A stretch of DNA of 64,000 nucleotides from Anaeramoeba ignava BMAN. Its lineage: Eukaryota > Protista > Anaeramoebae. Of this stretch, positions 11,500 to 33,120 are shown piece by piece (the first letter of the stretch is position 1; each line of letters starts with the position of its first letter). Position numbers and translations under genes: made by a program. The stretch covers positions 220,622-284,621 of the forward strand of contig JAPDFW010000093.1 of NCBI GenBank assembly GCA_028826165.1, read 5' to 3'. The notes under the pieces were generated by a model. The model was not told the origin of the DNA. It searched no databases and was given only the letters and a program-made list of their open reading frames with translations.

Positions 11500-12639
<1,140 letters not shown>

Positions 12640-12964: not shown

Positions 12965-14764
12965 TTAATTTTGATTATTAAATTTGTTAATTAATAAATC
13001 AAATAAATTTGGATTTGTTTGATTTAATTGAAAATAATCAATTCCAATTTGAATTTCATTAATAATTTCTTTTGTAATTTGAATTTCATTTTTAATTTGA
13101 TTTGAATAAATCCAATATTCAAATATTTGGAATGATTTATTACTTAATTCACTATAATCTGTAACTTTATTTGATTTATCTTCAGTTACAGATAAAAACA
13201 TTCCTCGATATAATTCACTTCTCATTGTTAATATTAATTTTGGAAATTTATATTGTTTTTCTTTTCTTTCAATTATAAAATCTTTTTCATTTTCATTTTC
13301 ATTTAAATAAATTCTTTTCATTGTTTCTTCAATTTTTTCATTTGAATTTATAATTTCTTTAATTTCAGAATATAATTTTGGATTTATTATTTTGTTTGAA
13401 TAAATCATTTCAAATATTTGATTTGATTCTTTAATTGATTTTTTTGAAATAATTTCTTGAAGTTTTTCAATTTGATTTTCATTTTGATTTAATCTATATT
13501 TCAATATTAATTTATGAGCTTTAATTATTTCTTCATTTTTGGTTTTAAATGAAATATCACAAAATTCTTTTCTTTCAAATAGTTTTATCAAATCTTCTTC
13601 AAGATTGGAAAAAGAAAGAGGAGAATAATAAAGAAATGATTTTTTAATGCCACAAGAAATATGATAATTAGAAATATCTTCATTAAATCTTAATTTAGGA
13701 AGTTCAATTTGAATTGGAATTGGTTGATTTTTTGTATCTCCAGTTCCTAATTGACCATAAAAATTATCTCCAAATCCTATTAATTTTGAATTAGAAGTTA
13801 AAATCAAAGTATGCCTGTATCCAACAGAAAAATCAAGAATATTATCATTTTCAAATAAAGATGATTTGATTTCAGTAAATTCATAAGTATCTTCATATCT
13901 TTTGCCAAGTCCATTATATTGATAATTTCCACATGAATAAAGTTTTCTTTTTGGATTTTCATTTTCATTTTCATTTTCAATCAACATTATTGAATGACAA
14001 CTTCCACATTGAATATCAATTATTTTACCTTTTGGAATATTTTGGATTTTGGTTAATTTTGTGATATATTCTTTTCTTGATTCTCCTAATCCAAATTGGC
14101 CAGAACTGTTATCACCACATCCAAATAATTCTTGATTTGAATTTAAAAGAAAAACACGATTTGAAGAATTTCCTGAAAATATTTTAGAAACATTTTTCAT
14201 CATTAAAATTGGGTTTTCTGTTTTTTTAAGTGTTTCAGAATCAATTCCAAGTTGACCAAAATAATTTGAACCAATTCCATAAGCATTTTGATTTGAAGTT
14301 AATAAGTAAATTGAATAAATTCCAGAAACAATATCTTCAATTATTCTATTATTTGTATCTTCAATTAATGATGAAATATTGATAAATTCTTTTGGATTTT
14401 CTGAATTAATATCTTTTCCTTTGGCAAATACATTTCCTTCTATTGTTAAAATAGCTTCATTTTGACCACCAACAGTTATTTTTTGAATATTTTCTTCAAT
14501 TTGGATTTTTGAAGGATTTTGATTTAAATCATTTTCTTTTAAATATTCTATTGCTTTTCCATTTTTAAAAAGGAAAATTGTTGAAAAAAAACCTGATGAA
14601 ATTTGATTAATTTGTTTTTCATTTTCATTTTCATTTTCATTTTCATTTTCATTTTCATTTTCATTTTCAAATTTAAATTGAATTGGTTTTATTATTGACT
14701 CTGTTGTTTTATTTTTGATAAGTTTTGGATATTCATTTAAACCAAAAAATAAACAATCATTCAT
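12965..14764 (-). CDS. RCC1-repeat beta-propeller + BTB-like domains, copy A (599 aa, intact)
   Basis: RCC1 repeats 'AYGIGSNYFGQLG', 'IDIQCGSCHSIML' and 'SVGYRHTLILTSNSKLIGFGDNFYGQLGTG'. C-terminal BTB-like 'EFCDISFKT...IKAHKLILKYR' and 'KDFII...PKLILTMRSELYRGMF'. Confidence 0.88.
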   Translation of the reverse strand: MNDCLFFGLNEYPKLIKNKTTESIIKPIQFKFENENENENENENENENEKQINQISSGFFSTIFLFKNGKAIEYLKENDLNQNPSKIQIEENIQKITVGGQNEAILTIEGNVFAKGKDINSENPKEFINISSLIEDTNNRIIEDIVSGIYSIYLLTSNQNAYGIGSNYFGQLGIDSETLKKTENPILMMKNVSKIFSGNSSNRVFLLNSNQELFGCGDNSSGQFGLGESRKEYITKLTKIQNIPKGKIIDIQCGSCHSIMLIENENENENPKRKLYSCGNYQYNGLGKRYEDTYEFTEIKSSLFENDNILDFSVGYRHTLILTSNSKLIGFGDNFYGQLGTGDTKNQPIPIQIELPKLRFNEDISNYHISCGIKKSFLYYSPLSFSNLEEDLIKLFERKEFCDISFKTKNEEIIKAHKLILKYRLNQNENQIEKLQEIISKKSIKESNQIFEMIYSNKIINPKLYSEIKEIINSNEKIEETMKRIYLNENENEKDFIIERKEKQYKFPKLILTMRSELYRGMFLSVTEDKSNKVTDYSELSNKSFQIFEYWIYSNQIKNEIQITKEIINEIQIGIDYFQLNQTNPNLFDLLINKFNNQN

Positions 14765-14930
14765 TTTTAAAAAGTAAAAAATGAAAAAATGATTTTTGGA
14801 ATTTTAATTTTAATTTTAATTTTAATTTTGATTTTAATTTTAATTTTAATTTTTAATTTTAATTTTAATTTTGATTTTAATTTTAATTTTGATTTTAATT
14901 TTAATTTGAATATTAATTTTAATTTTAATT

Positions 14931-16715
14931 TTAATTTTGATTATTAAATTTATTAATTAATAAATCAAATAAATTTGGATTTGTTTGATTTAATTGAAAA
15001 TAATCAATTCCAATTTCAATTTCGTCGATTATTTCTTGTGTAATTTGAATTTCATCTTTAATTTGATTTGAATAAATCCAATATTCAAATATTTGAAATG
15101 ATTTATTACTTAATTCACTATAATCTGTAACTTTATTTGATTTATCTTCAGTTACAGATAAAAACATTCCTCGATATAATTCACTTCTCATTATTAATAT
15201 TAATTTAGGAAATTTATATTGTTTTTCTTTTCTTTCAATAATAAAATCTTTTTCATTTTCATTTAAATAAATTCTTTTCATTGTTTCTTCAATTTTTTCA
15301 TTTGAATTTATAATTTCTTTAATTTCAGAATATAATTTTGGATTTATAATTCTGTTTGAATAAATCATTTCAAATATTTGATTTGATTCTTTAATTGATT
15401 TAGTTTGAAATAATTTCTTGAAGTTTTTCATTTTGATTTTGATTTTGATTTAATCTATATTTCAATATTAATTTATGAGCTTTGATTATTTCTCCATTTT
15501 TGGTTTTAAATGAAATATCACAAAATTCTTTTCTTCTAAATAATTTTATCAAATCTTCTTCAAGATTGGAAAAAGAAAGAAAAGGAGAATAATAAAGAAA
15601 TGAACTGTCATCTCCACAAAGAACATGATAATTAGAAATATTTTCATTAAATCTTAATTTAGGAAGTTTAATTTGAATTGGAATTAATTGATCTTCTGTA
15701 TCTCCAGTTCCTAATTGACCATATTCATTATTTCCAAATCCAATTAATTTCCCTTTATATGTTAAAATCAAATTATGAAAACCTCCAGAAGAAAATTCAA
15801 GAATATTATCATCATTTTCAAATAAAGATGATTTAATTTCAGTAAATTCATAAGTATGCCCATATTTTTTGTCAAGTCCATTATTTTGAAAATTTCCACA
15901 TGAATAAAGTTTTCTTTTTGGGTTTTCATTTTCATTTTCAATTAACATTATTGAATGCCAACTTCCACATTGAATATCAATTATTTTACCTTTTGGAATA
16001 TTTTGGATTTTGGTTAATTTTGTGATTTTTTTTTCTTCTTTTCTTGATTTTCCTAATCCAAGTTGGCCAGAACTGTTATATCCGCATCCGAATAATTCTT
16101 GATTTAAATTCAAAAGAAAAACATGATTTGAAGAATTTCCTGAAAATATTTTAGAAACATTTTTCATCATTAAAATTGGTTTTTCTGTTTCATAAAGTGT
16201 TTTAGAATCAAAACCAAGTTGACCATATTGATTTAAACCAATTCCATAAGCATTTTGATTTGAAGTTAATAAGTAAATTGAACTATCTCCAGAAACAATA
16301 TCTTGAATTATTCTATCATTTGTATCTTCAATTAATGATGAAATATTGATAAATTTTTTTGGATTAATAGCAAATCCTTTGGCAAATACATTTCCTTCTA
16401 TTGTTAAAATAGCTTCATTTTTATAACCAACAGTTACTTTTTGAATATTTTCTTCAATTTGGATTTTTTCAGGATTTTGATTTTGATTTTGTTTTGGATA
16501 TTCTAAATATTCTATTGCTTTTCCATTTTTGAAAAGGAAAATTGTTGAAAAATAACTTGTTGAAATTTGTTTAATTTGTTTTTCATTTTCATTTTCATTT
16601 TCATTTTCATTTTCATTTTCATTTTCAAATTTAAATTGAATTGGTTTTATTTTTCTGGTTCATTTTTGATAAGAATTGGATATTTATTTTCACCAAAAAA
16701 TAAACAATCATTCAT
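14931..16715 (-). CDS. RCC1-BTB copy B (two compensating 1-nt indels, probably assembly errors)
   Basis: ATG at 16715 (MNDCLFFGENKYP). Colinear with copy A. Frame slips at ~16650 and ~15402; overall length 1785 nt = 595 codons. Confidence 0.82.
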
Positions 16716-16875
16716 TTTTGAAAAGAAAAAAAATGAAAAAATGAAATTTTAATTTTAATTTTGAATTTTAATTTTAATTTTAATTTTAATTTTAATTTTA
16801 ATTTTATTTTTAATTTTGATTTTAATTTTAATTTTAATTTTGATTTTAATTTTGATATTAATTTTAATTTTAATT

Positions 16876-18792
16876 GGCTCACTTGAAAACCCTTCCAAGT
16901 GGCGAATAAAGGATTTTGGAACATAGAATCAAAGGGGAAATTTTTTGGTTGGATGCCAAAAAAGAAAAATTAATAAAAGATCTTGTTTAGACAACCAACA
17001 GGTTTTTTGACTTTTGTAGCATTATTGAAAGTGAATATTAATTCAAATGAACAAAAATAATAAATATTTTAATTAAAGAAAAATTCTCACTTTAAATTCT
17101 TCTCACTTTAATTCCACTTTTTAAGAAAATTTTCATTCAGCATCTAAGTTTATTTTCATTTTACTTTTATTTTTACTTACCTTTTTTTGCTTTTGAATCA
17201 ATTGAAAATGTCAAATCGCTTAATCTTTGAAGGAAAAATTTATCGATTGAAATGGAATAATGTGGAACGGAGCACAAAGTACTGGAGTTGTTTGTTTCCT
17301 GGTTGTAACGGAACAATAGTGGAAAAGAACGGACAATTAATACCTGGCAGACCTCATTCTGAAGATTGTTCAAGTCCAGAAAGATCAGAAATGGAAGCAA
17401 AATCATTGTTTTGGGGTTTATTTCTACTGAACTAAGGAAATTAGAGAATAAATCTGTTGATATTTATAATGAAGCTGTGAAGAAGATCACCGAGAAGATG
17501 AATGGGAAAAATGAAAAATTTGAAATTCCTCCACAACAGGAAGTACTCTCCTATATATCTCATAAAAGGAAAAAGATTTTTCCCTATGACCATTTAAGGA
17601 TTGTTTCCAGCTATCCTTACTCTAAAACAAAAGATGGATATCAATTTTGGAGATTCACTTCTGAGATATTAATTAGTGGAAAAAAGGAAATAGCAATGTT
17701 TTGGTTTTCTGATTTTGTTTCTCGTCCGTTTCTTGAAGCCAATCGAATTGTTCCTGGACGGGACCTTTTTAAGTGCTGCAGATCCTTTCAAACAACTCGT
17801 TTCTCTAATGGTCTATGATACAAGGTGCAGAATGTATATTCCAACACATTATATAGCCTTAACTGACAATTCCAAGAATTTATATAAGTATGCACTCAAT
17901 TTCCTCTTTACATTTCTTCTTCAAAATCAAATTAAATTATCTTATATCACCTGCGATTTTGAATGGACCCTCCAACAAGCTTTGAAGGAAACAATCCCAC
18001 AAGCAAAAATTGTGGGATGTTTCTTTCATTTCAAGAAAGCAGTACAAGCCAAATTAATGAAGTTTGCTCCTACACCAACTGAGGAAGAAAAACAAATTAT
18101 CATGGAAGAAATTGAAATCCTAACCTTTATTCCACCTGAAGAGATTGAAGGAAAGGTTCAAGAATTAGCAAATAAATTTTCTAAATTTTCAAAATTTTTC
18201 CAATATTTTCGTACAACTTGGTTGAAGAAATATGGACATTCAAGATGGAACATTCATTCTTATCCCAATTTATGGGAAAGAACCAACAATCCACTCGAGG
18301 GTTATCATAAAAAGCTTAATTCTATTCTCAAGCATGAAAAACCCAATATTTGTAAGATGGCTGAATTATTAATCAATGAGGAAGATTATTATCGCAGGAA
18401 AATGATGGAGAATCTCAACCAATGGTCAAACCATCCAGTGGATGAAAAAAGAGAAGAAACGAAACAATGGATGAATAGAATGAAGGTTTATTTAGATCAA
18501 AGAAAAGAAAAGTCAAATTTACAGATGACAAATTCACAAAGAAATAAACCTTCTCCAAGTCAAGAGAAAAGACGATTTCATTGCTCTCTATGCGGTTCGC
18601 CATATCATACGAAAAAGAAATGCTCTTTAAATCCCCAAAACAAATAATTTCAAAAGGAAAAATTTTTTTGGCGCAATAACAAGAATTTGGTTGTGATTTT
18701 TTTCCAATCAAAAAAACAAAAAAAAAATTTCCCCTTTGATTCTATGTTCCAAAATCCTTTATTCGCCACTTGGAAGGGTTTTCAAGTGAGCC
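16876..18792 (+). mobile_element. Mutator-like (MULE) DNA transposon, 1917 bp, perfect 71-bp TIRs, 8-bp TSD TTTTAATT
   Basis: Left TIR 16876-16946 (GGCTCACTTGAAAACCCTTCCAAGTGGCG...GGGGAAATTTTTT) is the exact reverse complement of 18722-18792. TTTTAATT flanks both ends (16868-16875, 18793-18800). Internal DDE transposase. Confidence 0.95.
17208..18647 (+). CDS. MULE transposase (FLYWCH/WRKY-like Zn finger, DDE core, C-terminal CCHC knuckle), ~479 aa after fixing two compensating indels
   Basis: 'YWSCLFPGC...H..C'; 'LFLDGTF' (D1); 'ITCDFE' (D2); 'GCFFH' (CxxH); 'RTNNPLEGYH' (E); 'CSLCGSPYHTKKKC'. Indels at ~17410 (T-run) and ~17740 (CC). Confidence 0.9.
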
Positions 18793-19324
18793 TTTTAATT
18801 TTAATTTTAATTTTAATTTTTATTTTTATTTTAATTTTAATTTTAATTTTGATTTTAATTTTAATTTTAATTTTAATTTTAATTTTAATTTTAATTTTAA
18901 TTTTAATTTTAATTTTAATTTTTAATTTTTAATTTTAATTTTTAATTTTAATTTTGATTTTAATTTTAATTTTGATTTTAATTTTAATTTTAATTTTAAT
19001 TTTAATTTTAATTTTAATTTTTGATTTTATTTTAATTTTTAATTTTAATTTTAATTTTAGTTTAATTTTTAATTTTAATTTTAATTTTAATTTTAAATTT
19101 TGATTTTGATTTTAATTTTAATTTTGATTTTAATTTTTAATTTTAATTTTAATTTTGATTTTAATTTTGATTTTTAATTTTAATTTTGATTTTAATTTTA
19201 ATTTTAATTTTAATTTTAATTTTAATTTTAATTTTAATTTTAATTTTAATTTTAATTTTAATTTTAATTTTAATTTTAATTTTTAATTTTAATTTTAATT
19301 TTAATTTTAATTTTAATTTAAATT

Positions 19325-21080
19325 TTAATTTTTAAATTGTTTAATTAATAAATCAAATAAATTTGGATTTGTTTGATTTAATTGAAAATAATCAATTCCA
19401 ATTTGAATTTCATCAATTATTTCTTGTGTAATTTGAATTTCATTTTTAATTTGATTTGAATAAATCCAATATTCAAATATTTGAAATGATTTATTACTTA
19501 ATTCACTATAATCTGTAACTTTATTTGAAGTATCATTTGTTACAGATAAAAACATTCCTCGATATAATTCACTTCTCATTATTAATATTAATTTTGGAAA
19601 TTTATATTGTTTTTCTTTTCTTTCAATAATAAAATCTTTTTCATTTTCATTTAAATAAATTCTTTTCATTGTTTCTTCAATTTTTTCATTTGAATTTATA
19701 ATTTCTTTAATTTCAGAATATAATTTTGGATTTATAATTCTGTTTGAATAAATCATTTCAAATATTTGATTTGATTCTTTAATTGATTTATTTGAAATAA
19801 TTTCTTGAAGTTTTTCAATTTCATTTTGATTTTGATTTAATCTATATTTCAATATTAATTTATGAGCTTTAATTATTTCTCCATTTTCTGGTTTTAAATG
19901 AAATATCACAAAATTCTTTTCTTTCAAATAATTTTATCAAATCTTCTTCAAGATTGGAAAAAGAAAGAGGAGAATAATAAAGAAATGATCTGTTTTCTCC
20001 ACAAGAAAGATGATAATTAGAAATATCTTCATTAAATCTTAATTTAGGAAGTTCAATTTGAATTGGAATTAATTTATCTTTTGTATCTCCAGTTCCTAAT
20101 TGACCATAAAAATTATATCCAAATCCTATCAATTTTGAATTAGATGTTAAAATCAAAGTATGCTGATATCCACAAGAAAATTCAAGAATATTATCATTTT
20201 CAAATAAAGATGATTTGATTTCAGTAAATTCATAAGTATGCCCATATTTTTTGTCAAGTCCATTATTTTGAAAATTTCCACATGAATAAAGTTTTCTTTT
20301 TTGATTTTGATTTTGATTTTCAATTAACATTATTGAATGACAACTTCCACATTGAATATCAATTATTTTACCTTTTGGAATATTTTGGATTTTGATTAAT
20401 TTTGTGATTTTTTTTTCTTCTTCTCTTGATTTTCCTAATCCAACTTGACCACAAATGTTATATCCGCATCCAAATAATTCTTGATTTGAATTTAAAAGAA
20501 AAACATGATTTGAATAATTTCCTGAAAATATTTTAGAAACATTTTTCATCATTAAAATTGGTTTTTCTGTTTCATGAAGTGTTTTAGAATCAAAACCAAG
20601 TTGACCATATTGATTTAAACCAATTCCATAAGCATTTTGATTTGAAGTTAATAAGTAAATTGAACTATCTCCAGAAACAATATCTTGAATTATTCTATCA
20701 TTTGTATCTTCAATTAATGATGAAATATTGATAAATTCATTTGGATTATTTGAATTAATATCTCTTCCTTTGGCAAATACATTTCCTTCTATTGTTAAAA
20801 TAGCTTCATCTTGATAACCTACAGTTACTTTTTGAATATTTTCTTCAATTTGGATTTTTGAAGGATTTTGTTTTGGATATTCTAAATATTCTATTGCTTT
20901 TCCATTTTTAAAAAGGAAAATTATTCCAAAATAACCTGTTGAAATTTGTTTAATTTGTTTTTCATTTTCATTTTCATTTTCATTTTCAAATTTAAATTGA
21001 ATTGGTTTTGTTATTTTTTCTGGTTCATTTTTGATAAGAATTAGATATTTATTTTGACCAAAAAATAAACAATCATTCAT
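19325..21080 (-). CDS. RCC1-BTB copy C (1-nt insertions at ~19890 and near the 3' end)
   Basis: ORFs 19869-21080 and 19325-19927 together are colinear with copy A. Confidence 0.82.
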
Positions 21081-21165
21081 TTTTGAAAAGAAAAAAATGA
21101 AAAAATGAATTTTAATTTTAATTTTAATTTTAATTTTATTTTTAATTTTAATTTTGATTTTAATT

Positions 21166-21513
21166 TTAATTTTGATTTTGATTATTAAATTTGTTAATTA
21201 ATAAATCAAATAAATTTGGATTTGTTTGATTTAATTGAAAATAATCAATTCCTCTTTCTATTTCATTAATTATTTCTTTTGTAATTTCAATTCCATTTTT
21301 AATTTGATTTGAATAAATCCAATATTCAAATATTTGAAATGATTTATTACTTAATTCACTATAATCTGTAACTTTATTAGATTTATCTTCAGTTACAGAT
21401 AAAAACATTCCTCGATATAATTCACTTCTCATTATTAATATTAATTTTGGAAATTTATATTGTTTTTCTTTTCTTTCAATTATAAAATCTTTTTCATTTT
21501 CATTTTCATTTTC
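21166..21513 (-). pseudogene. 5'-truncated RCC1-BTB fragment (copy E, last ~110 codons only)
   Basis: Matches the family C-terminus ('EKDFIIERKEKQYKFPKLILIMRSELYRGMF...NKFNNQNQN'). Homology ends inside the ENENE repeat, where the upstream region of BTB-TLDc copy 2 begins. Confidence 0.85.
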
Positions 21514-21538
21514 ATTTTTTTCATTTTTTTATTCAAAA

Positions 21539-22999
21539 ATGGAAACTTATTTAAATTTAGAAAAACTTTCAAATGATTTAAAAAATTTATTTCAAAATCA
21601 AAATCAAAATCAAAATGAAAATGAAAATGAAAGTTATTTTGATTTTGAAATAATTTGTGAACAAAATAAAACTTCATTTAAAACTCATAAATCAATTCTT
21701 TCTTCAAGAAGTCAATATTTTAAAACTCTTTTTAATTCAAAAATGAAAGAATACCAAGAAAATAAATTAATTCTAAAAGATGTTTCAAGTTCAATTCTAT
21801 TTTCAATTTTAAATTACTTTTATTCAGGAAAAATTGAAATTAATTTAGAAAATGCAGTTGAAATTTTAATTTTTTCTTCAAAATATTTTATTGATGAATT
21901 AATTCAAATTTCTTTAAAATTTATCAAAAACAATTTACAAATTGAAACCATTGTTGATGTTCTTAAATTATCTGAATCAATGAATTTAAACGAACTAATA
22001 GATTCTTCTTATCAATTTATTTTTCAAAATTTTACAGAACTTATCGAAACTTCATTTTTTCTTGAACTTGAAGAAAATCATTTAAATTCAATATTATCAA
22101 ATGATAAAATCCCGAATAAATGAATTTGAACTATTTCAAGCAATAATAAAATGGGGAAAACATAAATTAAATATTAATCAAGAAAAAGAAAAATTACAAA
22201 ATCAAATTTCAAATTTTATTCAAAAAATCAGATTTATTGATTTTTCAGAACAAGAAATTGAAGATACTTTGAAAGAAGATTTAATTCCAAATCAAATTTC
22301 ACAAAAATTAATTCAATTCCAAAAACTTCAAAAACAAAATGATAAACGAGAATTAGATCAATTTATATTCAAAATGAAAATCAAAACTCATTATTTTTTA
22401 AAACAAGATTAGGTTTGAATTCTTCATCAATAATCCAAGAAAAGGAACATTTTAAGAAATTAAAAGAATGGATAAATGATGATGAATTCTTTTATAAAAT
22501 GGAATTGGGATTTTCAGCAAAAAGAGATTTTTTTGATTGTAATAAATGGCATTCAAAATGCGATAATAAAGGAAAAACATTAGTTATTATCAAAACAAAA
22601 GATAATTTTATTTTTGGAGGATTCACTCAAGTTGGATGGACAACTGATAGATCAAAATGGAAAGAAGAAGAGGTAAATAATCCTTGGGGATACATCATTG
22701 ATCCAAAATCATTTATTTTTTCATTAAGAAATGATAAGAATGATAGAAAATCAGAAAAATTTAAAATTAAATCAGCGCAAACAATGCATTCAATTTTCTA
22801 CTATTCTGAGGGTGGTCCGAGCTTTGGAAGAGGACTTGATATTTGTATCAGATCAAATTTGAAGGATAGTTATTCAAATTTTGGATATTCTTATCATCTT
22901 CCTCATGGGGTTGAATATAATACAAAAGAAGCTAAGAGTTATTTAGCTGGTTCTTATAATCACTGGGTTGTTGATGAACTTGAAACTTATTTCATTTAA
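21539..22999 (+). CDS. BTB-BACK-TLDc protein, copy 2 (indels at ~22110 and ~22366)
   Basis: Three ORF pieces are colinear with copy 1; the N-terminus 'METYLNLEKLSNDLKNLF' is identical. Confidence 0.82.
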
Positions 23000-23089
23000 A
23001 AAACTTTTTTTTTATTCTTTTTCCAAAAGGAGGAAACGAAAAAAAGTGGAACAAGCTTCATCAATAAAAATTTCCTAAACAAATTAGAA

Positions 23090-24225
23090 TTTCTTTTATT
23101 AATATTATTTAATTAATATTATATTGAAAATGGAAATTATTTTGAATTAATATTTAATTAATAAATAAATTTAAAAATTAATTTATAATAAATTGATTGA
23201 AATTTTATTATTAATTTATAAATTATTTATTTAAATTTCTTTTATTAATATTATTTAATTAATATTATATCGAAAATGGAAATTATTTTGAATTAATATT
23301 TAATTATTTAATTTGTAAAATTAATTTTTAAAAAAATTTTAATTATGAAGAATAAATTAGGTTTTTAAATTTTTTCTTTTATTAATATTATTTAATTAAT
23401 ATTATATCGAAAATGGAAATTATTTTGAATTAATATTTAATTTATAAATAGATTTAAAAATTAATTTATAATAAATTGATTGAAATTTTATTATTAATTT
23501 ATAAATTATTTATTTAAATTTATTTTTATTAATATTATTTAATCAATATTATATCGAAAATGGAAATTATTTTGAATTAATATTTAATTAATAAATAAAT
23601 TTAAAAATTAATTTATAATAAATTGATTGAAATTTTATTATTAATTTATGAATTATTTATTTAAAATTTCTTTTATTAATATTATTTAATTAATATTATA
23701 TCGAAAATGGAAATTATTTTGAATTAATATTTAATTAATAAATAAATTTAAAAATTAATTTATAATAAATTGATTAAAATTTTATTATTAATTTATGAAT
23801 TATTTATTTAAATTTCTTTTATTAATATTATTTAATTATTAATATTAATATTATATCGAAAATGGAAATTATTTTGAATTAATATTTAATTCTAATTTAA
23901 AAATTAAATAGAATAATCTAGGTTTTTAAATTTTTTCTTTTATTAATATTATTTAATTAATATTATATCGAAAATGGAAATTATTTTGAATTAATATTTA
24001 ATTTATAAATAGATTTAAAAATTAATTTATAATAAATTGATTAAAATTTTATTATTAATTTATAAATTATTTATTTAAATTTCTTTTATTAATATTATTT
24101 AATCAATATTATATCGAAAATGGAAATTATTTTGAATTAATATTTAATTTATAAATAGATTTAAAAATTAATTTATAATAAATTGATTAAAATTTTATTA
24201 TTAATTTATAAATTATTTATTTGAA
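23090..24225. repeat. AT-rich tandem array 2, ~8 copies, modal period 146-147 bp
   Basis: Marker GAAAATGG at 23126, 23272, 23409, 23556, 23703, 23858, 23970 and 24116. Confidence 0.9.
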
Positions 24226-24743
24226 TTCTTAATATTTATGTAAATAGGGGTAATTTTTTAATTAAAGAAATTAAATAAAAAAAATAAACTTGTTTTTTTG
24301 CTTTAAATTAATAAGTGATTAAATTGTTTCTTTTTTTTTGCTTTTCTTTTTTATTTTAATTAAAAAAAAAACAAACAAGATCAAAACATTTTTTTTTTAA
24401 AACTTTTTTATTTTTAAAAAGAGTTTTAATAAGTTCTAGTCAAATAATTTAATTGTTTGAATAGTTAATTAAAAGTTTTTTTTCTTAGTTTTAATTCTTT
24501 TATTAAAAAAATAAAGCAAAAAAATAAAGAAAAAACTTAAAAAAATAAGAAATGATTAATAAATGACTAATTAAAATTGGTATAAAAGAAAAAAAAAATT
24601 TTTTTTTATTTTTCATTTTTCATTTTAAAAGAAATATTTCTTTTATTTTGTAATTATTGATTAAAAAATTTAAAATAAAATAAAAAATAATTTTATTGAT
24701 TAAAAAATTATTGATTAAAATAAAAATAAAATAGAAAACTAAA

Positions 24744-25875
<1,132 letters not shown>

Positions 25876-26140
25876 ATAGCATTTTTTTTAAAAGAAATAA
25901 TTTTCTTTTTTCTTTTTTCTTTTTTTTCATTTTTTTTTTTTTGGAAGGAATCTTTTTAACTAATACTTCTTTAAAACAAAATTAAGGAAAATAAAACAAA
26001 TTTGGTTCTTCTTCAAAATAATTTTTTAATTTTAATTTTAATTTTGATTTTGATTTTAATTTTGATTTTAATTTTGATTTTTAATTTTAATTTTAATTTT
26101 AATTTTAATTTTAATTTTAATTTTAATTTTAATTTTAATT

Positions 26141-27936
26141 TTAATTTTGATTATTAAATTTCTTAATTAATAAATCAAATAAATTTGGATTTGTTTGATT
26201 TAATTGAAAATAATCAATTCCAATTTCAATTTCGTCAATGATTTCTTTTGTAATTTGAATTTCATCTTTAATTTGATTTGAATAAATCCAATATTCAAAT
26301 AATTGAAATGATTTATTACTTAATTCACTATAATCTGTAACTTTATTAGAATTATCTTCAGTTACAGATAAAAACATTCCTCGATATAATTCACTTCTCA
26401 TTATTAATATTAATTTAGGAAATTTATATTGTTTTTCTTTTCTTTCAATTATAAAATCTTTTTCATTTTCATTTTCATTTTCATTTAAATAAATTCTTTT
26501 CATTGTTTCTTCAATTTTTTCATTTAAATTTATAATTTCTTTAATTTCAAAATATAATTTTGGATTTATTTTGGAATTATTTGAATAAATCATTTCAAAT
26601 ATTTGATTTGATTCTTTAATTGATTTAGTTGAAATAATTTCTTGAAGTTTTTCAATTTGATTTTGAATTTCATTTTGATTTAATCTATATTTCAATATTA
26701 ATTTATGAGCTGAGATTATTTCTCCATTTTTGGTTTTAAATGAAATATCACAAAATTCTTTTCTTTGGAATAGGTTTATCAAATCTTCTTCAATATTGGA
26801 AAAAGAAGAAATAAAAGGAGAATAATAAAGAAATGATTTATTAATGCCACAAGAAATATGATAATTGGAAATATTTTCATTAAATCTTAATTTAGGAAGT
26901 TCAATTTGAATTGGAATTGGTTGATTTTTGTATTTCCATTTCCTAATTGACCATATAAATTATATCCAAATCCTATTAATTTTGAATTAGAAGTTAAAAT
27001 CAAAGTATGCCTGTATCCAACAGAAAAATCAAGAATATTATTATCATTTTCAAATAAAGATGATTTGATTTCAGTAAATTCATAAGTATGCCCATATTTT
27101 TTGCCAAGTCCATTATATCGAAAATTTCCACATGAATAAAGTTTTCTTTTTGGATTTTGATTTTGATTTTCAATTAACATTATTGAATGACAACTTCCAC
27201 ATTGAATATCAATTATTTCACCTTTTGGAATATTTTGGATTTTGGTTAATTTTGTGATATATTCTTTTCTTGATTCTCCTAATCCAAGTTCACAAAATTC
27301 ATTCGATCCGCATACAAATAATTCTTGATTTGAATTTAAAAAAAAAACATGATTTGATGTATTTCCTGAAAATATTTTAGAAACATTTTTCATCATTAAA
27401 ATTGGTTTTTCTGTTTCTTTAAGTGTTTGAGAATCAATTCCAAGTTGATCAGAATCATTTGAACCAATTCCATAAGCATTTTGATTTAAAGTTAATAAAT
27501 AAATTGAAAAGGCAGAACAAACAATATCTTCAATTATTCTATCATTTGTATCTTCAATTAATGATGAAATATTGATAAATTCATTTGGATTATTTGGATT
27601 GACATCATTTCCTTTGGCAAATACATTTCCTTCTATTGTTAAAATAGCTTCATTTTTATAACCAACAGTTACTTTTTGAATATTTTCTTCAATTTGGATT
27701 TTTTCAGGATTTTGATTTAAATCATTTTCATTTAAATATTCTATTGCTTTTCCATTTTTAAAAAGGAAAATTGTTGAAAAAAAGTTTGATGAAATTTGTT
27801 TAATTTGTTTTTCATTTTCATTTTCATTTTCATTTTCATTTTCAAATTTAAATTGAATTGGTTTTGTTATTATTTCTGGTTCATTTTTTAAAAGAATTGG
27901 TTCTTGATTTAAACCAAAAAATAAAACTTCATTCAT
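26141..27936 (-). CDS. RCC1-BTB copy D (1-nt deletion in an A-run at ~26925)
   Basis: ORFs 26887-27936 and 26141-26782 plus the intervening sequence are colinear with copy A. Confidence 0.82.
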
Positions 27937-28063: not shown

Positions 28064-31011
28064 ATGTCATTTGGATTATTCAATACAGCAGAAGAAATTC
28101 CAATTCCACTTACAGGAATACAAATCAAAGCAAAAATCATTGATTTTGTTGGAGAAGTTGAAATTACACAAAGATATCAAAATATCAACAATTATCCTTT
28201 AGAATGTGTTTATAAATTCCTTTTAGATCAATCAGTTGCTGTCAACTCATTCCAAGCTCAAATCGGAGATAGATACATTCAGGGAGTAGTCAAAAAAAAC
28301 GAGAAGGCAAACGAAGAATACAACGATGCTATTGCCCAAGGCGAAACAGCAATGCTACTTTCGGAGAAAAAAGGAAAATTTGAAGTTTCGATTGGAAATT
28401 TTCCTTCTGGAACTGAAATTTATATTCAAATTAAATACGTTGTTGAACTTGAACCAAATTTGAATGGAGATGTTGTTTTTAAAATTCCCCACCAAATCGC
28501 TCCTCTTTTCCATTTGCGCGATCCACAATTTTCTTCTGATCATGTTCATGATTCCATCCAAAAAGTCTCAAACGGAATTTCAATTGATGTTCTTGTTTTT
28601 AAAGAACAAAATTTGGCGGAAATTGAATCAAATTCACTAGAAATTATCACTTCGGATTTTTCAAACGAATACAAATTAATCCAATTGAAAAATGAGTGCA
28701 TGAAACTTGAAAAAGATTTTGAATTAGTAATCAAAAGGAAAAATCCATCTTTTCCGAGAATTTGGATTGAAAAGGAAAACGAGGCTCAAATCGAGAAAGA
28801 TCAAGAAGACGCGATCATGATTTCTTTATATCCAATTATTCCACAGCAAAACTTCAAGGAAATTTCCGAAATTATTTTTGTTGTTGATCAAAGTGGTTCA
28901 ATGAGTGGTGATCGTATTGAATACACAAAGCTTTGTCTTCTCAAAGCAATGGAAAAATTGCCAAAATCTTGTTTCGTCAACATCGTTTCTTTCGGTTCAA
29001 CTTACTCTGCTTTGTTTGAAAAAAGTGTTCTTAATAATGATGCTAACAATAAAACAATTGTTGATTACATTCAAAAAATATCAGCTAATTTTGGTGGTAC
29101 TCAACTTTATTCTCCCCTTCGCTTTCTATTAGAACTAGAAAAAATCCCTCGTGTTCCAAGACAATTATTTATACTAACTGATGGAGAAATTCATGATACG
29201 CAAGAAGTACTTAATTTAGTTAAGAGGAATTCAGATTTTACTCGTTGTTTCACGTAAATTTTTTATTCCAAAAATTTTAAAATTTAAAAATTTAATTGTG
29301 TGTTTTTTGATTTTGATTTAGATTGTAAAATTTTATTTTTTAATTTTAATATTTAATCCAAAATTTCTTAATTGTTCCATTTTTTTTGTTGTTTTTTTTG
29401 GATTTATTTTTAGTGGGTAATTTTTCTTTACTTCTCATTTTCTAAATTATTTTGTAAATCTTAATCTTAATTTTCCAAAAATAAAAATTTTGTTTATTTA
29501 TTTATTTATTTATTAGAATTGGTCAAGATGCAAGTTATGATTTAGTATCAGGAATTGCACAATCAACTGGAGGAAAATCAGTATTTGTTGATTCAAGCAA
29601 CATATCACAACAAGTAATTCAGCAAATTTCAAGAGCTTTGCAACCAGCTTTAACTAAAATTCAATTATCATGGGGAGTTTTTGAAAATCATGTCAAACAA
29701 TCACCATCTAAATTAACCCCATTTTTCAACAAAGAAAGATATATTGTCTATGGGTTCATCAAAAGAAATATCCTCGATTCAATTCTGAACAAGCAAACAC
29801 AGTCTGCTCAACTTGAACAAAAAGAACCAAGTTATGGATTGAAAATCATCGCAGATCTTCCTGATGGAAATCCTTTGACAATCGAATTAGATTTCCAAAA
29901 CTCAATTTCTTTAGAAAATTCAAGAGTTATTAAAACAATGGCAGCCAAAAGATTGATTCATGATCTCGAAGTTGATAATTTTGATTCAATTGAAAATGTT
30001 CAAACCGAAATTGAGTCACTTTCTTTGAAATATCAAATCACAAGTCAATTCACAAGTTTTATTGCTGTTGATCAAAATTCCGAGCAATCTCACGAAACTG
30101 AAGAAATGAGATATCAAAATTTCTCGTATCAATCATCAGTTGACACAAGTTGTCTTCTTCTTCTTGATGTGACACCACTTACTCAATCAGTTGACACTCA
30201 ATTTGGTTTTTCCAAGTCAATTATTTCCCGAAACACGACAATTCCTACTAGAAAAGCAGTTACTTTTCAAACATGTTTTGATAATCAACCGTTTATCAAA
30301 TTTGGTCTTTTTGAAGGAGAACGAAATTTCTCAGCAGATAATTCACTTTTGAAAGAATTTACTATTCCAAGAACTAAACCTGAATCACAATCCAATATTT
30401 TTGATATCGCACTTGATTTAGATGCTAATTCAATTTTGCACGTGACTTTTGTTGATAAAGCAAATAACCAAGTTTTCAAACAAACTATTCCTAATCCACC
30501 TCGTTTGACTCAAGAACAAATCACTAAAATGGTCGAAGATGCTTACAAATTTGATCCCAATTCAATTCCTGATCCCAAAAAGGATTCTGAACCACAAATA
30601 CAACCAGATTTTATTTTGAATAATATTCAAGATCTTATTGATGATCCCAAGTTGATTTTGTTTGATGAAAACAATCAAGATTTGAAATCAAAAATTCAAG
30701 AAGAAATCAAATTAATTCGCAATGATATTTCTTCAAATGAACGAATAAAACGAATGAAAAGAAAGGAAGTTGAAGCCAAATTTGAAAAACTATTTGAACT
30801 TCTTAAGCCTATCATTTCCAAATTATATTCAATAGTGGTTTCATCAAAGGATCAAGAAGAAGTTAATCATATACTCAGTTATACATTTTTATTTTCGATT
30901 AAACCTTTATTTGATGAAACACAAAAACAAACACAAACAACTACGATTTATAATTATATGGGGAATCAAAATACAAATTATTCATTTCCTTCTATTGATG
31001 AAGTTGATTAA
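28064..31011 (+). CDS. VIT + vWA (vWA5A-like) protein fused to an Hsp70 linker/substrate-binding domain; exons 28064-29253, 29322-29324, 29414-29416, 29517-31011
   Basis: VIT 'EVEITQRYQN...LECVYKFLLD...GVVKKNEKANEEYNDAIAQG'. vWA MIDAS 'FVVDQSGSMSG...GGT...FILTDG'. Hsp70 'LLLLDVTPL...IISRNTTIPTRK...DNQP...FEGER...LDANSILHV...RLTQEQITKMVEDA'. Ends PSIDEVD. Confidence 0.88.
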
Positions 31012-31136
31012 ATTAAAACAATCAAAAATTTTCATAAACAAGAAATCTAAATAGAATTCAAAAACAATAAAAAATTATCAAAAAAACAAACTTTTTTTTT
31101 TCCTTTTTTTTTTTTCATTTTTTTCTATCTTTTTAA

Positions 31137-33120
31137 ATGAGTCAATCTCAAAATTCACAAGAAAAACAAAATGAAAATTTAAACAAATCACAAACACAAG
31201 AGAAAACGAAACAAGAAGAAACTAAAAAAGAATCAAATCAAAGTAAACTTTTTCCAAACAATAAAAAATAAAAATAAATAAAAAAAAAAATCAATTTAAA
31301 AAAAAAAACAGATCAAAATATCAATCAGGAAACAATCCAAACACGAACCAAGGAAAAAGAAACGAAGCACATTGATGAGACGGAATTTTCACACGAGGAT
31401 TCACTGTCGGAATATAAATCACAAGGAGATGAATCACCAGTACATTACAACGAAAAAAAGAATGAGAATTTTCCAGTTGAAGAAAAGACATATATCCCAC
31501 CGCATTACGAAACACGGAAGAGAGGACTATCACCGAATCGTTCACCGCCACGAATACGGACTCAAACGAACGAGATGAGTTACGCACGTGGGAAAACATA
31601 CGGAGAATCTGAAGCACATTTGCGAACCAATCAAGAACGAGATTTAAAAACTGAGACACGAAGCTTTTCGGGAGAGAAACAACAAATGCGCTCTCAAATG
31701 CCAAGCCATGTTTCTGGGGGTTATGGCGATCACGGCTATGAGGGACGACATAGTAATCGATCGCATTCTAGATCACGCTCTAGATCGCGGTCGCCCTATT
31801 CTCATCGACGTCATCGCACTGAAAGATATTCAAGAGATCGTGGATATTATTCTTATTCACGCACAAAGACATATAGTCGTCCTCATTATGAAAAAAAAAA
31901 GTATTATCAACAAAGTCATCATCGAGAACCTGCTCATGAATCCCCACCTTCTAATATTGTTGGTGTCTTTGGTTTGCCTCGTGATGTAGAGACAAGAGAT
32001 CTTAGTGAAATGTTTTCTAATTATGGTGATATTGAACGCATTCATATTGTCAAGGATAAAAAATATGGTGTTTCAAAAGGTTTTGCTTTTGTTTATTTTG
32101 TTAGAATTGAAGATGCTATTCAGGCTAAGAATAATTGCTCAGGAAAATCTATTCGTGGCAGAGTAATTAGAACAGATTTTTCTATGACACAAGGTCCTCG
32201 TGAAACAACACAAACACCATATTATATGGGAATGACGTAGGAATATTAATAAAACTCATTTATTTATAAAACTTATTTATTTATAAAATTCATTTATAAA
32301 ATTCATTTATAATTAAAATTCATTAAAATTCATTTATAATTAAAATTAAAATTAAAATTAAAATTCATTTATAAATTAAAATTAAAATTAAAATTAAAAT
32401 TTATTTATATTTAAAATTTATTTATATTTAAAATTAAATTTAAAATTAAAATTAAAATTAAAATTTAAAAATTAAAATTCATTTATAAATTAAAATTAAA
32501 ATTAAAATTAAAATTCATTTATAATTAAAATTAAAATTAAAATTAAAATTCATTTATAAAATTAAAATTATAATTAAAATTAAAATTCATTTATAATTAA
32601 AATTAAAATTCATTTAAAATTAAAATTAAAATTTATTTATAAAATTAAAATTAAAATTAAAATTAAAATTCATTTATAATTAAAATTAATTAAAATTAAA
32701 ATTCATTTATAAAATTAAAATTAAAATTAAAATTGAAATTGAAATTAAAATTCATTTAAAATTAAAATTAAAATTAAAATTAAAATTAAAATTAAAATTA
32801 AAATTAAAATTAAAATTAAAATTAAAATTAAAATTAAAATTAAAATTAAAATTATAATTAAAATTAAAATTCATTTATAATTAAAATTAAAATTCATTTA
32901 TAAAATTGAAATTATAATTAAAATTGAAATTAAAATTAAAATTCATTTATAAAATTAAAATTAAAATAGGAAATCAAATGATCGTTTTTCAATGATGTTT
33001 CCAAATCCTTATTTTTATTCTCCTTATCCTCCTTCAATGGATCGTTTTCGTTATCCTCCTCGTAACTACAGAGTAGAGCCCTTTTATCAATCAGATCCTT
33101 ATTATACACATCGAAAATAA
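31137..33120 (+). CDS. TRA2: Transformer-2-like SR/RRM splicing regulator (introns 31243-31311, 32237-32969)
   Basis: RS tract 'SRSRSRSRSP'. RRM 'NIVGVFGL...SKGFAFVYF', followed by the Tra2-type linker 'TDFSMTQGPRETTQTPYYMG'. Final exon ends TAA at 33120. Confidence 0.8.
32250..32965. repeat. Intronic (AAAATT)n microsatellite with CATTTAT interruptions (same type in the RPL37 intron, 40210-40985)
   Basis: Directly visible. Confidence 0.85.

Follow-up and report, generated by a model that had tools for sequence, protein, structure and literature searches.

Two consecutive 3-nt exons in a VIT-vWA gene of Anaeramoeba ignava and a genome-wide class of candidate one-codon exons

A VIT-vWA gene of Anaeramoeba ignava BMAN very probably contains two consecutive internal coding exons of a single triplet each, ATT and TGG, which belong to its main mRNA and are flanked by short introns that would be removed successively by intron definition. 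This reading draws on the layout of the locus, the conserved residues restored by the triplets, a 6-nt surplus in the RNA, the omission of both triplets from the public model and a genome-wide excess of 3-nt candidates. All positions given below without a contig prefix refer to the + strand of the window, i.e. the whole 64,000-nt stretch of DNA that was analysed.

Exon 1 (28064-29253), recognized as an open reading frame with Pfam VIT and VWA_3 matches, encoded the VIT domain together with the greater part of the vWA domain, and ended in phase 2 inside Thr397. It was followed by intron 1 (29254-29321, 68 nt), the ATT triplet (29322-29324), which finishes Thr397 and begins Phe398, intron 2 (29325-29413, 89 nt), the TGG triplet (29414-29416), which finishes Phe398 and begins Gly399, and intron 3 (29417-29516, 100 nt). 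The last exon (29517-31011; stop codon at 31009-31011) encoded what remains of the vWA region, followed by a part resembling Hsp70 at the C-terminus. The coordinates of the gap and of the triplets and the intron lengths, proposed in the earlier note, were exact on recomputation from the window sequence. All three introns were of the GT-AG type, in phase 2 and of normal size for the genome (mode 76 nt, median 102 nt), and none had an internal AG: the 263-nt gap starting at 29254 (13.7% GC) contained only three AG dinucleotides, two of which preceded exactly one triplet and then GTAA. Micro-exons are internal exons of at most 27-30 nt, and the ATT and TGG pair, at 3 nt each with canonical AG and GT flanks, are micro-exons by every feature examined.

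With both triplets, the protein had 896 residues, two of them derived from the micro-exons, and its Pfam matches (PF08487, 4.5e-29; PF13768, 2.2e-16) placed VIT before vWA, as in vWA5A/VIT-vWA proteins. The C-terminus of this vWA5A-like protein (29638-31011) carried an Hsp70 substrate-binding-like region (PF00012, profile positions 380-598) with the tail IDEVD, and the Hsp70-like and vWA parts formed a single transcript according to the RNA contig. An exhaustive search with exon 1 retrieved the public model KAJ5070681.1 (894 aa), which has one intron here and reads RCFTIGQ, bearing out the expectation that gene prediction would miss the micro-exons. The last exon by itself gave no match in a protein search, probably since the 894-aa model lies above the 889-aa length limit applied there. 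Database searches throughout used single exons or retrieved proteins, and the junction peptides were derived from the window sequence.

Transcript evidence came from the contigs of one public run (X1) containing the gene. The RNA in this run was spliced, as the neighbouring control intron at 31243-31311 was joined with no letter between its flanks and the intron at 32237-32969 was also removed. These two RNA-supported introns (69 nt with an A-rich acceptor, and 733 nt consisting of an AT repeat) belong to an RRM gene at 31137-33120, whose end was placed too early by the ORF tool. The contig of the VIT-vWA gene (record 1; 2,678 nt, depth 44, gap-free) covered 28089-29253 (record positions 1514-2678), ending exactly at the last base of exon 1, and 29521-31023 (record positions 1-1503). 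Ten letters lay between positions 29253 and 29521, of which four correspond to the start of the last exon (29517-29520) and six were left over. Direct joining predicts no extra letter at this junction and inclusion of one exon predicts three. The earlier note had singled out cDNA with the direct junction alone as the decisive contrary result, and the contig displayed another form, with six letters remaining between the exons. As positions 29483-29520 were masked as a repeat in the RNA comparison and the ten junction letters were not printed, the surplus was established by length and not by sequence; measured this way, the micro-exons are present in the mature mRNA. Path enumeration over the gap found that the sole GT/GC-AG path yielding 6 nt uses both triplets, and the six letters would accordingly be ATT and TGG. 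Among A. ignava proteins, none derived from a transcript was identified: KAJ5070681.1 was alone in its cluster, and all 120 TLDc matches listed were genome annotations.

The same surplus bears on the idea that the internal AG and GT dinucleotides are ratchet points of recursive splicing, or borders of nested introns, with the triplets discarded and an 894-aa protein produced. Stepwise removal of one intron at internal AG/GU sites is documented (PMC13149111), and the public annotation does draw a single intron, but the mature contig exceeds the length expected from direct joining by 6 nt, ratchet points have no base between AG and GU where here there are three, with 6 nt retained in all, and the triplets code for conserved residues; this reading is extremely improbable.

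The residues in question form part of the core strand of the vWA domain. Inclusion of both triplets restored the F-G pair in FTFGIG, and the peptides announced in the earlier note for the four splice forms were reproduced (RCFTFGIG with both, then RCFTLIG, RCFTGIG and RCFTIG), every skip product being in frame. In 12 paralogs within the A. ignava genome, the motif F[TS]FG[IV]G was uninterrupted by an intron. The alignment of KAJ5070681.1 showed a two-column gap at this site, filled in all 137 aligned homologs and with Gly in 135 of them. Against a profile of 64 homologs, the form with both exons scored 240.8 bits, those with one exon 229-231 and that with none 226.8, each skip costing 10-14 bits, and the observed 6-mer was among the best-scoring 8 of the 4,096 possible fills. 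The hydrophobic-G-hydrophobic-G strand that follows the TDG motif, a feature of vWA5A/VIT-vWA domains, was likewise complete only with both micro-exons. In a confident structure model of a paralog (pLDDT 92.7), the F-G pair lay inside the core beta-strand 132-139; single-sequence folding reached a pLDDT of 38.

The two-triplet arrangement is not due to chance. Dinucleotide shuffling of the gap produced two AG-NNN-GTAW sites once in 20,000 trials, and for a pair of random triplets with the composition of introns, the probability of restoring F-G was ~0.001. These values weigh against an origin of the six extra RNA bases elsewhere, whether through a non-canonical acceptor situated 6 nt further upstream or through 6 nt by which a flanking exon differs owing to an error or another allele, with the triplets being coincidental. 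Such an origin is made conceivable by the masked junction letters and by the single-base mismatches of the RNA contig to the assembly (4 of 2,668 bases, at 28456, 30089, 30575 and 30599), which reflect either another allele or assembly errors; three of these are non-synonymous (S590Y, P752L and I760T). Yet an upstream acceptor would imply an intron ending in TT and the peptide FTIRIG, a downstream donor would lead to a stop, and the same layout is repeated hundreds of times in the genome, making this explanation highly improbable.

How the two exons are retained can be proposed from the sequence and from known systems. The spliceosome most likely recognizes the short AT-rich introns individually, pairing each GTAA donor with the nearest downstream AG, at a distance of 68-100 nt; the three introns would then be excised one after another, each triplet would thereby be kept in the mRNA and, with both kept, the vWA core beta-strand F-T-F-G-I would be complete. 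As a 3-nt exon is unable to hold factors on both sides simultaneously, definition presumably operates across each short intron, with the introns removed one by one, and introns near the modal length without internal AGs would favour pairing of a donor with the next acceptor. In Caenorhabditis elegans, short flanking introns relieve the dependence of micro-exons on PRP-40, exon definition being sterically infeasible for micro-exons (PMC8378409). As short flanking introns rescue inclusion in that model, the vWA pair is consistent with intron definition, and intron definition or ordered splicing, as put forward in the earlier note, is a reasonable inference. Inclusion is probably near-constitutive. 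The TAATTGT motif that the earlier note described as branch-like was indeed present in introns 1 and 2; as TAATTG occurred in just 6 of 97 comparable introns, the branch-point label is unsupported. Neither branch points nor intermediates of splicing were observed.

Alternative splicing at meaningful levels, with both exons real and the products carrying FG, L, G or no residue so as to tune the vWA domain, would agree with the preserved frame of all skip products and with the tendency of animal micro-exons towards frame-preserving cassettes (PMC8378409), and contigs lose minor isoforms, so that minor forms would be invisible here. Skipping may also be tolerated, as a skip product keeps a hydrophobic-Gly pair at the strand end. 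Against this, one unbroken contig crosses the junction in the 6-nt form, F-G lies in the core strand with Gly nearly invariant, the profile score drops with each skip, and skipping would require an intron of 160-263 nt compared to the genome mode of 76 nt. Alternative splicing of this extent is unlikely.

Concerning the origin of the introns, the nearest A. ignava paralogs (L003 and L005; quick tree, SH-aLRT 93 for the group) and the three Anaeramoeba flamelloides genes examined had no intron at the FTFG strand. The simplest account is therefore that the VIT-vWA paralog gained the introns, with their loss from the other genes as the alternative. Recent duplication of the three vWA introns was unsupported, as their similarity scores (0.65-0.78) were not clearly above background (0.54 ± 0.12; p 0.05-0.18), compared to 1.1-1.6 for the repeated units of a BTB gene (L051, see below). 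As the protein also has the same length as its homologs, plain duplication of an intron-plus-codon unit seems not to explain the vWA locus; it does account for the cloned arrays found elsewhere in the genome. A DNA search for a second copy returned low-complexity matches only.

Candidate one-codon exons number more than 2,000 across the genome, and the vWA pair is one case among them. The assembly (42,843,398 bases, 147 contigs) was scanned with a strict pattern, WWWTAG, k bases and GTAWWW, limited to TAG acceptors. The scan returned 2,904 sites for k=3, compared to 803 for k=2, 529 for k=4 and 584 for k=6, an excess of ~2,100-2,400 sites at 3 nt with TAG acceptors alone, so that the earlier note had understated the scope. 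Other spacings served as controls, and the reversed pattern was discarded as unsuitable because of the frequency of AATG and GATT in coding sequence. At distances of 45-130 nt, there were 936 tandem pairs of the 3+3 type and 30 of the 4+4 type, the latter being mostly simple repeats. Among 228 candidate triplets, one was a stop codon where 16-25 were expected, a deficit that is only indicative since their phases are mixed. Selection against frameshifts upon occasional exon skipping is the simplest explanation for the strong bias towards 3 nt, and the class as a whole probably consists mostly of constitutive exons whose introns are spliced singly by intron definition. The 3-nt peak was absent from 59 kb of A. 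flamelloides DNA, a sample too small and without ankyrin genes, so that this absence is uninformative.

Candidate triplets were found in several gene families. At the ankyrin loci, fetched with the tandem pattern and hence selected for it, 14 of the 23 gaps between exons of ~96 nt contained two triplets, placed at the tip of the hairpin, and 59 of 75 short AG-GT spacings were 3 nt. The ankyrin-BTB genes L029-L040 had one repeat per ~96-nt exon and two triplets per hairpin tip, at the positions that are randomised in designed ankyrin binders. A kinase-ankyrin gene (L050; G000:C2:7100-9600, - strand) had runs of up to ~10 consecutive 3-nt candidate exons in its ankyrin hairpins; the introns of these runs were dissimilar, and AAG was frequent as an acceptor. 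Two BTB-TLDc genes (L052, G000:C1:942300-942800; L053, G000:C1:1057900-1059300) had 7 and 16 phase-1 triplets after a GPxFG motif, inclusion of all of which would give Tyr/Asp-rich loops. The length of the TLDc loop ranged from 1 to ~11 residues across annotated paralogs, and the public model of one TLDc gene omitted all seven triplets. The window itself contained two actin genes inside a repeated block with several RCC1-BTB and BTB-TLDc genes (11500-12636 and 24775-25875; 12968-27936). Finally, the BTB gene L051 (G000:C1:409300-413130, - strand) contained more than 30 tandem units of ~76 nt, each with a near-identical intron and a variable triplet; this array was broken by a 1-kb ATT microsatellite, and a few units had decayed donors (GC or AT).

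The genome of A. ignava BMAN has 32,108 introns, with a mode of 76 nt, a median of 102 nt, a mean of 300 nt and 8% GC (10.1101/2023.03.03.530753), and the distance between this mean and mode fits hidden composite introns. The intron section of that article and its journal version (PMC11550330) leave micro-exons unmentioned, and a literature search for Anaeramoeba micro-exons found none. The present locus provides transcript support, by length, that the A. ignava spliceosome can put two consecutive 3-nt exons into an mRNA. Should the same hold for the ~2,100-2,400 excess sites, many protein models of A. ignava would be wrong at conserved or ligand-binding positions, and the species would be a natural model in which to study how small an exon can be, how introns are defined and how new introns arise beside existing ones. 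A more speculative proposal, possible but doubtful, is that one-codon exons are routine and that skipping in amplified arrays generates a combinatorial set of binding loops to which each exon contributes one residue, as a splicing-based diversification of receptors. Candidate arrays are the ~10 exons per ankyrin hairpin, the 7-16 in the TLDc loop and the >30 cloned intron-plus-codon units of the BTB gene, the vWA pair being the fixed housekeeping end.

Exons of 3 nt and even 1 nt, and adjacent small exons, are already known from animals, plants and Schistosoma; in the literature searched, no protist genome was described as having tandem exons of exactly 3 nt in the thousands. Animal 3-nt micro-exons, in mouse Ncam, Drosophila TnT and homothorax, cytohesin-1 and MAP4K5 (PMC8042270, PMC7392893, PMC6314551, PMC8632122), share with the present ones a three-base internal exon with canonical splice sites and a preserved frame, easily missed by aligners. 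They were described individually, and several are regulated cassettes, whereas the A. ignava exons are a consecutive pair splitting codons in phase 2 within a conserved core strand, between introns of 68-100 nt, and part of a class of >2,000 candidates in a single-celled eukaryote. Regulated neural (SRRM3/4-type) animal micro-exons have an upstream intronic UGC enhancer; TGC was absent from the 3' parts of introns 1 and 2, which thus lack this feature.

In plants, 2,398 micro-exons of 1-15 nt were described over 10 species, including 1-nt exons in APC11 and VPS55 and adjacent exons of 5 and 12 nt in rice (PMC8831610). The small ones are likewise mostly included, encode conserved domain residues, escape annotation and coexist with intronless gene copies, but their length is divisible by 3 in about half of the cases and is most often 9 nt, whereas A. 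ignava has a similar number of candidates in one genome, of exactly 3 nt and often in tandem. The Schistosoma MEG family (35 secreted-protein genes, mostly 15-nt exons within 6-81 nt, introns up to 5 kb; PMC10526429) also has runs of consecutive, very short and mostly frame-preserving exons. Those of A. ignava differ in being of single-codon size, in ordinary folded domains and with short introns between them, and the VIT-vWA gene itself is unlike a MEG, with 2 of 896 residues from micro-exons, introns of at most 100 nt and folded VIT-vWA domains.

Recursive splicing at zero-nucleotide sites and stwintrons resemble the present locus in that an apparent single intron is removed in several steps (PMC13149111, PMC6616335), but no intron-internal bases are retained there, while 6 coding nt are kept in A. 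ignava. The locus also differs from the cloned arrays of the L051 type, as its neighbouring introns are not near-identical copies. At the protein level, the gene product shares with vWA5A/VIT-vWA proteins, relatives of ITIH and PARP4, the VIT and vWA domains, the DxSxS and TDG motifs and the FTFGIG strand. It differs in its Hsp70-like C-terminus and in the three introns of the FTFG strand, absent from its paralogs and from the A. flamelloides genes examined. An A. flamelloides locus (L055, protein P0047) encoded a vWA5A-like protein with an actin domain at its C-terminus, a fusion unlike the Hsp70-like one.
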